From NCBI GenBank assembly GCA_965644315.1, contig CBFFRQ010000052.1:62001-126000 (forward strand): a stretch of 64,000 nt of DNA, read 5' to 3'. Below are positions 32,952 through 39,215 of the stretch, in pieces. The notes beneath the pieces are model-generated. The model did no database searches. It had not been told where the DNA came from and saw only the letters and a program-made list of their open reading frames with translations. The position numbers were made by a program, and so were the translations under genes. Position 1 is the first letter of the stretch; every line of letters begins with the position of its first letter. This DNA comes from Caecitellus pseudoparvulus. Its lineage: Eukaryota; Protista; Bigyra: Bicosoecida.

Positions 32952-34277
32952 CTACAGCGTCTTCTCCTTGAGCCCCTCCAAATCCGGGCGGTCCTTGTCC
33001 CACTTGGTGCGACCGGCGCCCCGGCTCTCGCCGCCAGTGGAGTCCCAGGCAGCCCACTTGGAGCCCGGGGGCGTCAGCAGCGTGCCGAAGATCCAGTCAA
33101 AGAGGATGGTGAACTGGCCGTAGTTGTGCTTGTAGTCAGTGTGGTGGATCTCGTGGTAGCCTGCGCCCATAATGGGCTCTGACTCCAGCTGGATCGTGTC
33201 GTGGATGCTGGTGCTCCAGATGGCAGTGAAGAAGAGCAAGATCTCATGCGTCAGGAAGTGCATGGGCACAACGAACATCATGAGGACGTAGGGCAAGGCC
33301 TGCAGGCAGCCGTCCACGGGGTGGAAAGCCAATGACGCAAAGGGGGACAGCGTGTTGTTCTTGTTGTACTTGTGGTGGATGGCGTGCAGGTGCTTGTACA
33401 GCGGCTTGATGTCGTGCAGCAGGCGGTGCATCCAGTACACGCCTGCCTCCACGCACACCATGTACACGACGAACCAGCACAGGTATGCCGGCAGGCCGAC
33501 GGTGTCGATGTGCTCGTACGCCTGGGTATAGCCCCGCTCCACCAGCCACTCCGCCCACGTGGGCAGCCACGTGTACAGGAACATGGCGTTCTGGGCGACC
33601 TGAAAAGGTGGCCGGGTGCGGGGGGTGAGCATGGGGTGGCGGTGTGTGGGGTTGCTTCCTGGCAAGGGCGGCCTCACCTTCACCTGCTCGTACATGGCCC
33701 CGAACGTTGGCAGGGTCTGGTCCGGAGCGAAGGAACAGGCCCTGAAAAAGCCGTAGATGCCGACACACCAGAGCGCGCCCACCACCATGTACAGCAGCGT
33801 CCCCAGGATGTAGTTCCTGTGCACGTGTTTGGGTCGAGGTGTGCTGCCGAAGCGAGCACGTGCAACGCAAACAGGGCGCATCACGAACCGGTACCAGGAC
33901 ACCATGAAGTGGGGCAAGTTCGCCTCGATGACGGAGGGGATGACCAGGGAGTTCTTCCACGCGTTGAACTCGATGAAGGCTCGCAGGTCAGGGTCCGTTG
34001 TGGCGTTGTAGTGATCTCCCACGAGCCAATCCAGCCAGCCGGAGCCGTCAATTTCCGCACAGTTCAGCGCGTGAGTGGGGTCCCGCTTGAGCCACGCCCA
34101 GTCGAAGGACTGCAGCATGTCCAAGGCAGTGAAGTTTCCTTGGGGGAAACTTGCACCCACACTCGGCACAGCCGCGGCGTGAATCGCTGTGCTGGTGCTC
34201 GTCACCAAGACGGCGCCCACAGCCATGGCTGCCACCAATCCGGCGGTTGTCAACAGCGCATCGGTGCGCACGTACAT
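32952..34277 (-). CDS. ERG3: Delta7-sterol C5(6)-desaturase (fatty acid hydroxylase superfamily), with short in-frame introns
   Basis: Three His boxes: YWMHRLLH, HLHAIHHKY..SPFASLAFHPVDG and GAGYHEIHHTDYKHNYGQF..DWIFGTL. Confidence 0.92.
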   Translation of the reverse strand: MYVRTDALLTTAGLVAAMAVGAVLVTSTSTAIHAAAVPSVGASFPQGNFTALDMLQSFDWAWLKRDPTHALNCAEIDGSGWLDWLVGDHYNATTDPDLRAFIEFNAWKNSLVIPSVIEANLPHFMVSWYRFVMRPVCVARARFGSTPRPKHVHRNYILGTLLYMVVGALWCVGIYGFFRACSFAPDQTLPTFGAMYEQVKVRPPLPGSNPTHRHPMLTPRTRPPFQVAQNAMFLYTWLPTWAEWLVERGYTQAYEHIDTVGLPAYLCWFVVYMVCVEAGVYWMHRLLHDIKPLYKHLHAIHHKYNKNNTLSPFASLAFHPVDGCLQALPYVLMMFVVPMHFLTHEILLFFTAIWSTSIHDTIQLESEPIMGAGYHEIHHTDYKHNYGQFTILFDWIFGTLLTPPGSKWAAWDSTGGESRGAGRTKWDKDRPDLEGLKEKTL

Positions 34278-34420
34278 GATGAAAAGTGTCGGTGAAAGGC
34301 CCTGTCAACAGGGGGCATAAAGCCAAGTGTGCCTTGTTGCTCTGCAGGCTCAGCAAAGCCGTGAACCCCGTGCATGCGTGGCTCGCGCAAAACAAAGTGA
34401 ATTTCCCGCCGCATTGATCC

Positions 34421-35621
34421 TCACATGATGACGCAGGGTGTGCTAGCCTGGTACTCCGCTGCATGTGTCAAGTGCCCCACGCCCTTCTCCACGCGCTGCA
34501 CGGTCCTGCCCACCGACTCATCCACTTGCTGGATGCGCTCACTGTCCTCCGCCACCAGCGTCGCCAGGTCGGCCATGATGTCTTTGATGGCGGCAGCCTC
34601 GGTGGCAATGGCCAAGGCTTCCCGCTCCCGCTCCGCCATGATGGCCGCCATGACCGCCACTGAGCCGTCAGGCAGCATTTCTTCCCGCTCAGCCAGCGCC
34701 TGTCCCTGCTGCTGCGCCGCCTGCGGTGCGCCGGAGCTTGCTCGGCCGTGCTGGGTGCTGCTCGTCGAAGCAGCCCCTCGAGCACTGCCCACGGTGTGTG
34801 GCAGGCGATCCAGCGTCACCTTGATGTGGCGATGCACAGCCTTGAGGGCCTCCTGCAGGCGCCGCTGGCCTGCCACCACCCCCTGCAGCGTGCGGGCAGC
34901 TGGCCGAGGCAGGCTGCCGCTCTGGGCCGCCTCCCGCTGCACCCGCAGCACTTGCGCACAGTACCCCTGCACTTTCCTCTGCACGCCTTGGGAGGTGCGG
35001 GACAGCAATTCGCGGAAGGCAGCCGTGTCTGCGTCAGTGCCCAGGTTGTCCGCCAAGCGCGTCAGGCGTTGCACGACGTCCTCCATCTTGCGCAGATCCC
35101 CTGCCAGAGACACGACACGCTCCTTCAGTGACTCGCCAGGCATGTCTGCGCTGCTGCCCTTGCCCGCACCAGGCATTGCGGTGTCAGCCTCCGTATGCAC
35201 CCCCGGCTCGTATGGGCGCAGCCATCGCCTGCGTCGAAGCCCTGCGGTCCAGTGTGCGCTGCTTGTTGCCTGGCCTCTGCCCAAGGCAAGCTCGGCTAGT
35301 GTTTCTGCGTATGACCAGCCATGAGAGTCACATGCTTCCGGTTGTTTTGGCTCCACGCGCCAAGAGCTGCCGTGCTTCCACTTCATGCCCCGTGGGGGCG
35401 GCATGCGCGGGTCTCTGTGTGGGCGGCGTGGCGAAACGTCACAGAAACGCCAGGACGACCCAGCCACCGCGCACTCACAATGGCTCGTCGCCAGCAGCAG
35501 ATGACCAGGGTGGCACAATGATTCCTGATGCTAGTTCAGCGGTCCATTCTCCACTTCGCTGAAGCCACTGGTACTCGTAGACCTCCTGCTCGTGGTCTGA
35601 GGCCTGCAGCCCAGAAGCCAT
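34421..35621 (-). CDS. Dysferlin (DysF)-domain syntaxin-7/Pep12-like SNARE with C-terminal CaaX box, about 378 aa; exon 1 35621-35479, intron 35478-35415, exon 2 35414-34421
   Basis: The DysF motif is split across the intron: EVYEYQWLQRSGEWT...PPWS | PPPRGMKW...WRVE...CDSHGWSYA...LRRRRWLRP. It is followed by an Habc-like LGTDADTAAFRELL, the SNARE motif EREREALAI...DLATLVAEDSERIQQVDESV...LTHAAEYQ, and the terminus CVIM-stop. Confidence 0.85.
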
Positions 35622-35960: not shown

Positions 35961-38900
35961 ATGGAGCGCGTCGTGCCGAGCCCAAGCGAGCCGCTCTTGG
36001 CTTGCCTGGCTGCAAGTGGTGACGTTCAGTTGCTTGCACATGTGTGTGCGGACTGTTCTGCGCCTGCCAGGCCTGCCGCGGCAAGTGAGCGTCAGGCTGG
36101 CGCTGCAGTCCAAGCTGGACACGGCGGTAGCGCCCGCGTCACGGTGCCCACGCGCAGGACCCGCATTGCCGCCAGCGTGCACTTGCCCCTCTCCATGGCA
36201 AGAGACGTAGCCAGTCTCAGCATGGTCTGGGGCCCCCAGGGCTCCACTCTGCATGTGGTAGGAGGGACACCCTGCACCTTGTGCACCTTTGCCGTGTCCC
36301 TGGTCCAGCCTGCACACACAGGCAACAGCCGAGCACAGCAAGCAGAAGCAGCAGCTGAGGGGGTTCCGACAACATCATGGATGTCCTGGTTTGATGGTGC
36401 CCTGGAGGCCCTCGTAGGCGGTGAGGAGGTCGAGGAAGAGCACGCTCACGTGCAAGCAGCGATCACAGCGTGCGACACTGCGTGTTTGGGGGGGTGCACG
36501 GTGCGCCTGTCCCTCATGTTCGCCCAGAGCATACAAGCGACATTTTCCTCTTCCCCCATCCTCTGCACGGCTTCAGCAGCGGGCCTTGTCCTCGCATCTG
36601 CTACTTCCCCGCGACGCATGGCGCTGGCACCGTGGGGGCACCCTGGGTGTGCGCTGGGGGGACTGCACCCACGTTTAGGACCTGATTCCACATCGCATGT
36701 CACCACCCTGGTGGCTGTGGGAGACTGGCTTGTGCTGGTGGCCGCCGACACTGCCTGGGTGCAGCCATGCGGGCGGGACGGACCGTGGCAGGCACACAAA
36801 CTGCCTGCTGGCACGCAGACAGTGGTGCCGTGTGGCTGCCACGGCACCGAAGCGCTCGCCTGTGTCGTCCTGCGCCCTGACCGCAGGACGGCCATCACCT
36901 GTCTGAGCCTCGCCTCTGGCCGGTGCCGCTGGTCCGCCACTTTGGCCAGGAGTGCGTACGCCGTGCATGCACGAGCAACGTGCTCGCACGCCTCGAGCGT
37001 GAGAGGCAGTCCCTGGAGCGACATCTTGGTCGTCACAGATGCAAAGGGCTGCTGTGACGTCTTGTCTGTTGTCGACGGCCTGCGACTGCTGGGGCTCCAG
37101 GCAGGGGCCGGTGCAGTGCTGACTGGCTGCGGTTCACTAGCCTGGCCAGTGGGCCGCTCCACGTGGCAGCTGGCCCCCCTGCCACTGCCTGCACAGGAAG
37201 GCAGTGGTATCGCGTGCGAAATGCGTGGTGGATCCAGTGCCCTCACTGTTGCCTGCGCGCCGTGCGCTTCAGATGTGGCCTTCACACCCCGTGCACTTTG
37301 GACACGGGGCCAGGCCGGCTCCCGTGTGCCCTTCCCCCCTGACTTGTGCCAGGCTGGTAAGCAGGGCGTGGCGCAAGTCGTTGTGCTCAAACATGGCACC
37401 TTGCACGTGTGCGTCGTTGTGTCTGGGACGGCGATCGGTGTGTGCACACGTCACAGGCGGAGCCAAGCGTGGGGTGACATTGCTGTGTACCCGATGAGCC
37501 CCCTGCTGGGGGGCTGCACTGTGCGATCTGCGTGTGTACTCCCAGGCCCTGTGCCCCAGCTTGCTGTGCTTGCAGTGCAGCAAGCTGCCATTTGCCTCAT
37601 CACGGCAGAGATGCAGACGGGTGGAGAGCTTGCCCAGTGGCGCGGCAAGCAGCAGGCGACCCCTGAGGGTGCGTCAGCGACTGCAGCCCTCACTCCCCTG
37701 TGGTCTGCTTCTCTTGCAACCGCCTCCCTTGCACCTGCTGTACTGTGGGCTGACGAGTCTTCCTTCGTGCTGTGGGACGGCGTGGCTGCGCACGAGGTTC
37801 CGGCCCACACCCCTGGCTACTCCGCCGCCCTGGGCATGCCATGTGCCGGGCATGGTTTCCAGGTAGTAGGATACATGGCCCAGTCTGGTGTGCAGCTCGT
37901 TGCCGTACCCCCACGCAGCTTTCTGTGGCTGGTGCAGGAGGATACTGGGGGTGCAGTGGCCATCACGGCAGCGCCAATTGGAGACCCAGCATCACCTTCC
38001 CCGTCACAGCCTGGGCTGACGCTGCGTTCCCTTTCTATTGTGCAGCTCGCTCCTGTATCTCTCCCTGCACTGTCGCTCTCCTCGCCGATTCCCAGCGCCT
38101 GCCGGGCTTGCGTGACCGGCTCAAGCACCCATGCGTCGGCGTGGCATGGAAAGGGCACCCCTGTGCACGCACTGCACTGCCTTCTGACTGGGTGCTTGCT
38201 GCACGGATTGCATTCCGTTGCACGCCAGGTGCTGCGTCCCAGTCAAAGCGCCCTGAGCTCCACACTCCTGCTGCATGGGGCAGTGGCTAGCACTGTCGCG
38301 CCGGCACTCCCGGTGCTCCCAGCCCAAGTCGAGTTGACACTGGCACACGCCATGACGTGGGCGGCCAGACATGCAAGTGCCTTGCCACGGGCAACAGCGT
38401 GGCTGTCAGCGCTGCACCTGCCCATGGCGCTCTGTGTGCTGGTGCTCGTCGCCCGCAAAGGTGAGACGAGGCGGCTGCCAGACTGGGCGGCGGCTTGCGG
38501 GCCACCCCTGGCCCTCTGGGCCCATGCTCTGTGTTGTGCTCGTGTGCACCTGACGGCCCTGGCCGCGGCAGTAGCAACGGCGCAAGGCGCAGCCCAGACT
38601 GGCGCAGCCACCCCAGCAGAAGTGGCCAGGAAACTGCAGGTTGCATCCGAGCCCGCTGCTGCCAGTGCCTTGACGTCCCTGTTTGCAGCGGCACAGAGCT
38701 TGTTGCTGGTGCAAGAGTCTGTGCTGTCTGGCATTTCTCAGTCACCGTGCAGCTTGCCCTGGCTGCCTGAAGGTGCAGGGGAGGTGTCCGAGCAAGCCAG
38801 CGACCTGTGTGACAGTCTACTTGAACTGCAGGAACCACGCGCTGCGGAGCACGCCCCCTCTGTGCACATCGTGGTTGCTTGTGCAGCACGCCTCGCGCCG

Positions 38901-39215
38901 CAACTTGACCAGCTGGCCAGGCTTACCCGCGCTGTCCTGCCCAAGGCCGCCCTCCGCTTGCCTGAAGCAGCGCTGGCAGAGTCGCAGCTCCCGCACTGCG
39001 TTGTACACCTGGCTCGAATTCGCTTAGCCGTGCTCGAGATCGGGGAACAGACATCTGCCTTTGTGAAGCGAGTGCGGCAAATGTGTCCGCAGCCAGTGGC
39101 TGGTGCGACAGTGCCATCCACCTGCGGAGCGGCCGCGCATGCTGCAAGCACCAGTTTGCCTGGCTCAGTCCGCCAGGCGTCCTTTTCCCAAAGCCCCACT
39201 GCGCACAAACCCTAG
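35961..39215 (+). CDS. Divergent RIC1-like protein (Rab6/Ypt6 GEF subunit), 1084 aa
   Basis: A long ORF with a beta-rich N-terminal part and a helical C-terminal part. The segment CVLVLVARKGETRRLPDWAAACGPPLALW...AAQSLLLVQ resembles the RIC1 motif ARKTE..W..LF...G.P..LF...AASYLL.LQ. The ORF itself is well supported; the RIC1 identity is tentative. Confidence 0.55.
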   Translation: MERVVPSPSEPLLACLAASGDVQLLAHVCADCSAPARPAAASERQAGAAVQAGHGGSARVTVPTRRTRIAASVHLPLSMARDVASLSMVWGPQGSTLHVVGGTPCTLCTFAVSLVQPAHTGNSRAQQAEAAAEGVPTTSWMSWFDGALEALVGGEEVEEEHAHVQAAITACDTACLGGCTVRLSLMFAQSIQATFSSSPILCTASAAGLVLASATSPRRMALAPWGHPGCALGGLHPRLGPDSTSHVTTLVAVGDWLVLVAADTAWVQPCGRDGPWQAHKLPAGTQTVVPCGCHGTEALACVVLRPDRRTAITCLSLASGRCRWSATLARSAYAVHARATCSHASSVRGSPWSDILVVTDAKGCCDVLSVVDGLRLLGLQAGAGAVLTGCGSLAWPVGRSTWQLAPLPLPAQEGSGIACEMRGGSSALTVACAPCASDVAFTPRALWTRGQAGSRVPFPPDLCQAGKQGVAQVVVLKHGTLHVCVVVSGTAIGVCTRHRRSQAWGDIAVYPMSPLLGGCTVRSACVLPGPVPQLAVLAVQQAAICLITAEMQTGGELAQWRGKQQATPEGASATAALTPLWSASLATASLAPAVLWADESSFVLWDGVAAHEVPAHTPGYSAALGMPCAGHGFQVVGYMAQSGVQLVAVPPRSFLWLVQEDTGGAVAITAAPIGDPASPSPSQPGLTLRSLSIVQLAPVSLPALSLSSPIPSACRACVTGSSTHASAWHGKGTPVHALHCLLTGCLLHGLHSVARQVLRPSQSALSSTLLLHGAVASTVAPALPVLPAQVELTLAHAMTWAARHASALPRATAWLSALHLPMALCVLVLVARKGETRRLPDWAAACGPPLALWAHALCCARVHLTALAAAVATAQGAAQTGAATPAEVARKLQVASEPAAASALTSLFAAAQSLLLVQESVLSGISQSPCSLPWLPEGAGEVSEQASDLCDSLLELQEPRAAEHAPSVHIVVACAARLAPQLDQLARLTRAVLPKAALRLPEAALAESQLPHCVVHLARIRLAVLEIGEQTSAFVKRVRQMCPQPVAGATVPSTCGAAAHAASTSLPGSVRQASFSQSPTAHKP

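Follow-up and report, generated by a model that had tools for sequence, protein, structure and literature searches.

Syntaxins are, by the textbook account, held in the membrane by a C-terminal transmembrane helix, and the exceptions are either palmitoylated (syntaxin 11 and syntaxin 19) or anchorless (isoforms of tSNARE1). The classic prenylated SNARE is Ykt6, which is an R-SNARE. Here, a syntaxin gene of a different build is described from the bicosoecid Caecitellus pseudoparvulus (GenBank assembly GCA_965644315.1, contig CBFFRQ010000052.1, positions 62,001 to 126,000 of the forward strand), a stretch of 64,000 nucleotides that is referred to below as the window. The locus is predicted to be a functional two-exon syntaxin gene, and its product would consist of a DysF domain, an Habc bundle, a Qa-SNARE motif, and a terminal C-V-I-M in the form of a CaaX box, without a transmembrane anchor. 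As judged by sequence comparison, the gene is a member of a conserved but unannotated family of eukaryotic Qa-SNAREs with a CaaX box of the farnesylation type at the C-terminus, and most of these proteins also carry a DysF domain.

Among known proteins, the predicted protein probably comes closest to the endosomal and vacuolar Qa-SNAREs (syntaxin 7, syntaxin 12/13, Pep12, Vam3, and SYP2), with which it shares the Habc bundle, the linker, and the Qa-SNARE motif. It differs from them in having a CaaX box rather than a transmembrane tail, an added DysF domain, and an aspartate in the zero layer of the SNARE motif. With Ykt6, which is farnesyl-anchored and cycles between the cytosol and membranes, it has in common the C-terminal CaaX box, the farnesyl being predicted here, and an N-terminal domain that could regulate the exposure of the lipid. 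However, a longin domain and a double-cysteine motif characterize the R-SNARE Ykt6, while the present protein combines a Qa-SNARE motif, Habc and DysF domains, and a single cysteine. Syntaxin 11 and syntaxin 19 are likewise Qa-type proteins without a transmembrane helix and have lipidated C-terminal cysteines; in contrast to the CaaX box observed here, these metazoan proteins use a cysteine-rich palmitoylation cluster, and they include no DysF domain. In the vertebrate tSNARE1, derived from syntaxin 12, a Qa-SNARE of the endosomal type is likewise joined to an N-terminal domain of foreign origin, although that domain is Myb-like and no lipid attachment site is predicted there, as opposed to the DysF domain and CaaX box of the present protein.

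Two further systems replace the membrane-spanning segment of a SNARE by a prenylation signal. In effectors of the Legionellales such as LseA, a SNARE motif is followed directly by a CaaX box in the place of the transmembrane helix (10.1101/810531; 10.1101/2022.01.28.478187), but these are bacterial proteins that are farnesylated by the host and have no DysF domain, whereas the present gene is an intron-bearing eukaryotic nuclear gene whose intron is kept in an orthologue. The same chemistry, predicted here, was also engineered in Sso2-CIIL and in lipid-anchored Vam3 by exchanging the transmembrane segment of a Qa-SNARE for a prenylation signal. While such constructs are mostly fusion-defective (PMC2192637), the present proteins are natural, conserved, and equipped with an additional membrane-binding domain. 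A search of the open literature, outside subscription papers and curated SNARE databases, for a DysF-syntaxin or a prenylated eukaryotic Qa-SNARE returned only Ykt6, the Legionellales effectors, and the engineered constructs; no description of a DysF domain fused to a SNARE was found, nor any paper containing both "DysF" and "Qa-SNARE". Domains and a lipid signal that are each known thus appear in a combination that was found described nowhere and that, from the predicted proteins, is conserved across divergent lineages.

Gene structure

The gene lies on the reverse strand of the window, and its features are listed in Table 1. The ATG that opens exon 1 is the first start codon after an upstream in-frame stop. 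The predicted protein is about 378 amino acids long, composed of 47 codons and two bases from exon 1, a leucine codon split by the intron, and 330 codons from exon 2, and it terminates in A-S-T-P-C-V-I-M followed directly by TGA.

Table 1. Predicted features of the DysF-syntaxin gene and its neighbors (positions in the window)
Feature	Position	Strand	Remarks
Exon 1	35479..35621	(-)	143 nt; ATG at 35621; 47 codons + 2 nt; N-terminal half of DysF (Y-E-Y-Q-W ... P-P-W-S)
Spliceosomal intron	35415..35478	(-)	64 nt; GTGAGT...CACAG; phase 2
Exon 2	34421..35414	(-)	991 nt coding + TGA (34423-34421); rest of DysF, linker, Habc, linker, SNARE motif, CaaX
DysF domain, split by the intron	35213..35582	(-)	ends R-R-R-R-W-L-R; from profile A4 and homologue model
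Habc-like three-helix bundle	34805..35128	(-)	exon-2 residues 96-203
Qa-SNARE helix	34442..34669	(-)	exon-2 residues 249-324
Zero-layer codon	34544..34546	(-)	GAC (Asp); Gln in syntaxins; from alignment A5
CaaX box	34424..34435	(-)	C-V-I-M; TGA directly after (34421-34423)
Spacer, presumed 3' untranslated region	34278..34420	(-)	143 nt, up to the fatty-acid hydroxylase gene; no tail-anchor exon
Fatty-acid hydroxylase / sterol-desaturase-like gene	32952-34277	(-)	intronless; 441 aa; Pfam FA_hydroxylase 5e-23; own N-terminal hydrophobic helix
Interval between start codons	35622-35960		340 bp between ATGs
Ala-rich open reading frame	35961-39215	(+)	1084 aa; head-to-head with the syntaxin gene

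The 64-bp intron, which had been proposed in the first-pass annotation from the letters of the window, holds up on several grounds. Besides its GT-AG ends, the orthologue at L014, with a protein identity of about 38% and in a genome of 59% GC, carries an intron in the same codon, likewise behind its second base and thus in phase 2. In a strain that is 98% identical (L002), the intron contains a 1-nt insertion that would disrupt a coding frame. Retention of the intron leads at once to an in-frame TGA at the intron start. In addition, homologues encoded by a single open reading frame align colinearly, exon 1 matching the initial half of their DysF domain and exon 2 the latter half. The intron is present in all of the metagenome contigs L002-L005, and because of this they represent DNA and carry no information on splicing. 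For the searches and structure models described below, the two exons served as separate queries (35481-35621 and 34424-35413, both on the reverse strand).

Divergence from the 98% strain is 1.4-1.5% in the exons as compared with 7.6% in the 5' flank. The coding changes include 10 synonymous and seven non-synonymous substitutions, and the latter fall mostly in predicted disordered linkers. Together with the observations on the intron, this pattern therefore indicates a real gene under purifying selection.

A C-terminus without a transmembrane helix

The predicted protein stops nine residues past a conserved Y-Q and contains no transmembrane helix, and only four linker residues lie between the SNARE motif and C-V-I-M. 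A splice donor of the sequence GTGAGG overlaps the stop codon, such that a further exon encoding a tail anchor had to be considered. All GT and GC donors in the last 90 nt were combined with all AG acceptors in the next 2.6 kb, and no pair within this range yielded a transmembrane helix followed by a stop. Hydrophobic continuations arose only by running into the coding sequence of the downstream fatty-acid hydroxylase (441 aa), where they ran on for hundreds of residues. At the corresponding position, the orthologue at L014 ends in CAA-TAA and the homologue at L016 in AGC-TGA, and no GT donor is present at either stop.

An exhaustive phmmer search of 1.84 billion protein representatives gave 64 matches, most of which were ordinary syntaxins with transmembrane anchors. 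It was only in this search that a family became visible, as word-indexed searches returned almost nothing besides the copy from the 98% strain. That copy, a metagenomic open reading frame identical at 98% to exon 2 (P0001), likewise ends in CVIM. More informative were 12 divergent relatives that end exactly four residues from a cysteine, at the same alignment column as the window protein, with the tails CAIQ, CVIQ (in two proteins), CTLS, CSVQ, CAIA (in two proteins), CTTM, CSLC, CVVC, CLIS, and CVVM. Over the last 95 residues these proteins share 27-58% identity with the window protein, and the cysteine is invariant in all 13 sequences, the window included. The CaaX box can hence not be attributed to chance. 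The X position is occupied in the same 13 sequences by M, Q, S, A, or C only, and the two positions between are mostly small or aliphatic. Farnesyltransferase prefers these residues at X. Such a restriction argues for selection on the CaaX box as opposed to read-through into introns.

The first-pass annotation had claimed a protein without a transmembrane anchor that ends in CVIM-stop and had asked whether the terminal CaaX is conserved in relatives; the sequence, the splice scan from GTGAGG, and the tails of the relatives bear out the former, and the invariant cysteine answers the latter. Its suggestion that C-V-I-M arose locally by truncation of a syntaxin-7 transmembrane helix has to be abandoned, as the CaaX box is old and family-wide, in proteins that are 21-45% identical to the window protein. 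A transmembrane exon reached through GTGAGG, orthologues that all have transmembrane tails, or an N-terminus without a DysF match had been named there as results that would overturn the reading, and none of the three was found, the first within the 2.6 kb scanned.

Distribution of the family

A DysF N-terminus was found in at least eight lineages, represented by the window protein, P0002 (through exon 1 on L014), P0010, P0024, P0025, P0027, P0077, and P0080. At least two members, P0026 and P0075, have no DysF domain, and both pass the Pfam threshold for Syntaxin_2. EukProt contributes one of the DysF-less members, in the form of a eukaryotic gene model. The names given to the members in their sources are either absent, "hypothetical protein", or, in one DysF-less member, "syntaxin". 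Similarly, the nearest feature cluster in the Atlas consists of 51 unnamed members, with Pex24p in 22%. A pattern search of metagenome contigs, for which a closer alignment was used, the first being too divergent, gave 598 pattern matches with none confirmed. The view that no protein of this architecture had been described stands as far as the open literature is concerned, but the architecture is not a singular one, as it recurs in these eight or more lineages.

In a quick maximum-likelihood tree, the window protein grouped with P0002 and P0005 at a Shimodaira-Hasegawa-like approximate likelihood ratio test (SH-aLRT) value of 99. This clade was placed beside the syntaxin-7-like gene of the same genome at an SH-aLRT of 86, with many forks left open, and most of the other DysF members appeared in a neighboring clade. 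The tree speaks neither for nor against a single origin for the CaaX proteins.

The genome itself, an assembly of 30.6 Mb in 215 contigs, also holds ordinary syntaxins with transmembrane anchors, including one with syntaxin 7 and syntaxin 13 as its best matches in the PDB and one that is syntaxin-1-like. Because of their presence, the DysF-syntaxin represents an extra paralogue and not the sole endosomal Qa-SNARE. Prenylation enzymes are encoded as well, with the prenyltransferase alpha subunit (PPTA repeats) at two loci, the beta subunit at three loci (up to 315 bits), and an ICMT at 100 bits.

The DysF domain

To represent the N-terminus at the level of the family, a profile (A4) was built for which only N-terminal regions of syntaxin-family members were used, with no known DysF protein included. 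Against the PDB, it matched myoferlin (1.7e-15) and dysferlin (7e-13) across the full length of the DysF domain, along with dysferlin's inner DysF domain (4CAH, 1.2e-10) and TECPR1's N-terminal DysF domain (8P5P, 1.6e-8). The fold was modeled with AlphaFold on residues 1-115 of the homologue P0010, using the A4 alignment in which both window exons are included as separate rows, and the model reached a predicted local distance difference test (pLDDT) score of 82. In a Foldseek search with this model, the 13 best matches were all DysF domains (TECPR1 with TM-scores of 0.60/0.65; dysferlin 4CAH), and unrelated folds appeared only after them, at E > 1. The family profile and the fold matches thereby sustain the earlier assignment of the N-terminus to DysF.

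The domain shares with the DysF domains of TECPR1, the Pex30/Pex31 family, and the ferlins both the fold and the signature (Y-E-N-Q-W, P-W-S, G-W-x-Y, and R-R-R-R-W), while the tip loops that serve ligand binding are not conserved. In TECPR1, the DysF domain uses its variable tip loops to sense sphingomyelin exposed to the cytosol (PMC10476172), and the DysF domain of Pex30 binds phosphatidic acid (PMC12101078). A prediction of the ligand from the residues of TECPR1 was considered and rejected, as the binding loops vary among DysF domains (PMC10476172).

Two other DysF genes were observed in the same genome. At L024 (G000:C30:530406-533954), a single frame of more than 1100 amino acids unites a kinesin motor and a coiled coil with a DysF domain (Pex24p, 32 bits) and ankyrin repeats, and represents another unusual DysF fusion. 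The third DysF gene of the genome, at L025 (G000:C38:339334-342546; Pex24p, 31 bits), was seen as an open frame of 175 amino acids.

Habc bundle, SNARE motif, and zero layer

An AlphaFold2 model of exon 2 (mean pLDDT 78) begins with a beta region that corresponds to the second half of the DysF domain and a disordered linker. Three Habc helices follow at residues 96-122, 131-165, and 170-203, with pLDDT above 90, and a second disordered linker leads to a continuous SNARE helix of 76 residues (249-324), leaving the last six residues free. The first Foldseek match of this model was Sso1 (E 4.9e-4), with the Habc domains of syntaxins next. Among the fold clusters of the Atlas, those nearest to the model were families of the Syntaxin_2 type, being SYP2-like, syntaxin-12-like, and TSNARE1.

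A profile of the SNARE region of the family (A5) matched, in the PDB, the Qa-SNAREs syntaxin 1A (4.8e-15), syntaxin 13 (2.1e-13), and syntaxin 7 (1.7e-12), followed by Sso1/2 (about 1e-10) and syntaxin 17 (5e-8), whereas the Qc-SNARE syntaxin 8 was matched at just 0.008. The strong matches were thus confined to Qa syntaxins. The window sequence alone matched Tlg2, Sso, and syntaxin 1A at E-values of 0.003-0.05. The helices of the model and the A5 matches uphold the Habc-like helices and SNARE motif noted at first sight. The accompanying label of a syntaxin-7/Pep12-type protein is favored by the placement in the tree and by the Syntaxin_2-type folds, although support for it is only moderate; the bit scores of A5 per aligned residue fail to separate syntaxins 1, 7, and 13.

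At the zero layer, a glutamine was retained in 10 of the 13 sequences of alignment A5. An aspartate was found in the other three, which are the window protein, P0005, and P0024.

Proposed mode of action and alternative readings

On balance, the protein is slightly favored to be a recruitable t-SNARE (target-membrane SNARE) of the endosomal type that needs the farnesyl and the DysF domain together. It would be synthesized in the cytosol, and farnesylated, trimmed, and methylated at Cys375. By analogy with the Ras proteins, a single farnesyl alone should bind a membrane weakly, and the last 60 residues of the window protein include one cysteine, with no cysteine-rich cluster; similarly, the DysF-bearing members of the family have neither a basic cluster nor a second cysteine ahead of the CaaX box. 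A lone farnesyl without a polybasic stretch or a second cysteine would hence give only weak membrane binding, which is why a second contact would be needed. The DysF domain may provide this contact by recognizing a specific lipid or state of the membrane, leading to a stable attachment. The protein could in this way be placed on its target membrane on demand, comparable to Ykt6 and syntaxin 17, and pair there with Qb, Qc, and R partners that are themselves anchored by transmembrane helices. We infer that it is peripheral rather than integral to the membrane. Xu et al. are said to have found (PNAS, 2011) that lipid-anchored Vam3 supports HOPS-dependent fusion.

A more specific proposal, and a speculative one with the odds against it, is that the DysF domain recognizes a lipid signal, for instance a lipid that becomes exposed when endomembranes are damaged or mature, and together with the farnesyl supplies a Qa-SNARE to a membrane otherwise lacking one, thereby licensing fusion in repair, patching, or the phagosome or vacuole. 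Membrane repair, phagosome fusion, and contact sites had also been raised as possible settings in the first-pass annotation. If so, the protein would link lipid sensing by DysF directly to the fusion machinery, functions that reside in separate proteins in animals (ferlins and TECPR1), and the family would serve as a natural experiment on the ability of lipid-anchored syntaxins to drive fusion in vivo. More generally, a farnesylation box on a Qa-SNARE combined with a DysF domain would amount to a novel means of putting a t-SNARE on a membrane. It would bear on the old question, raised by the engineered constructs, of whether a lipid-anchored syntaxin drives fusion or merely blocks it, and in this family the DysF domain would become accessible in a simple and tractable context.

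Several observations weigh against the account given so far. When anchored by geranylgeranyl, Sso2 and Snc1 form complexes, yet they dominantly inhibit fusion after docking (PMC2192637). The replacement of glutamine by aspartate at the zero layer could weaken the function of the SNARE motif in this lineage. The ligand of the syntaxin DysF domain cannot be predicted, because the tip loops are not conserved (PMC10476172). At the level of the single protein, all Pfam matches were below threshold, with SNARE at 0.0028 and Syntaxin_2 at 0.054 for the window protein and Pex24p at 0.0026 for exon 2 alone; the domain calls would for this reason not be acceptable on single-protein Pfam matches, and it is the family-level evidence that decides. 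Finally, the stop of the homologue P0024 (L017, 1978-2237), CAG-TGA-GTA, coincides in part with a consensus GTGAGT donor, and at least 85 further codons, T-rich and hydrophobic, can be read in frame past this stop before the contig ends. The continuation is not shaped like a tail anchor; it could be untranslated region, intron, or read-through, and the caveat applies to L017 alone.

The main rival to a fusion-competent, recruitable t-SNARE is an inhibitory or regulatory SNARE, which would reach the membrane through the farnesyl and the DysF domain, replace the membrane-spanning syntaxin-7-like paralogue in SNARE bundles, and arrest fusion at docking or hemifusion, acting as a brake or tether. 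This reading, which has the aspartate of the zero layer and the missing bilayer-spanning anchor as its basis, is possible, if rather unlikely. The block after docking imposed by prenyl-anchored Sso2 and Snc1 (PMC2192637) would be its precedent, as would tSNARE1, the main isoforms of which have no transmembrane domain and were proposed to act as an inhibitory SNARE (i-SNARE) (10.1101/2021.02.09.430442). TSNARE1 clusters are, furthermore, among the nearest Atlas folds, and a canonical paralogue with a transmembrane helix, which such an inhibitor would displace, is encoded in the same genome. However, the glutamine kept in 10 of 13 members implies that a loss of fusogenic features is not a trait of the family. 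An inhibitor would also require neither a lipid-sensing domain nor a lipid anchor precisely five residues past the SNARE motif, and an anchor at a fixed distance right after the motif is how fusogenic SNAREs are built. Ykt6, which is prenylated, is fusogenic.

Far less probable is that the C-terminal cysteine is not prenylated, being either palmitoylated, as in the S-acylated, transmembrane-less syntaxins 11 and 19, or unmodified, which would leave a soluble SNARE, one anchored by DysF only, or a decaying paralogue. Unlike the cysteine-rich clusters of syntaxins 11 and 19, the single cysteine of the present family is always placed four residues from the end with a farnesyltransferase-type X, and both the purifying selection on the gene and the processing enzymes encoded in the genome speak against this alternative. 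The least probable reading, largely refuted, is an incomplete gene model, in which GTGAGG is a real donor to a downstream tail-anchor exon and the CaaX box an artefact of reading into an intron: while the donors at the stops of the window gene and L017 (the latter with its open hydrophobic codons) and the prevalence among the homologues of ORF-style gene calls, which end at any intronic stop, would fit it, it is contradicted by the splice scan, by the stops of L014 and L016, by the constrained CaaX box in 13 of 13 sequences, by the EukProt gene model in the family, and by the shape of the L017 continuation.

Genomic setting

The surroundings of the gene have a GC content of about 64%, and the window includes long, intron-free open reading frames. 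Light-harvesting proteins were sought in the genome and gave no match, which is a weak negative, as the control genomes gave none either. Upstream, the 1084-aa open reading frame showed no detectable similarity to the gene on the opposite strand upstream of the orthologue at L014 (E 0.43), and a conserved head-to-head synteny found no support. Downstream, the hydroxylase gene begins on the same strand, 143 nt past the syntaxin stop; its matches in the Atlas were confined to broad clusters of eukaryotes. In the comparison of the intervening spacer with the 98% strain, the first 90 nt after the stop were identical, and five differences were found in the following 53 nt.

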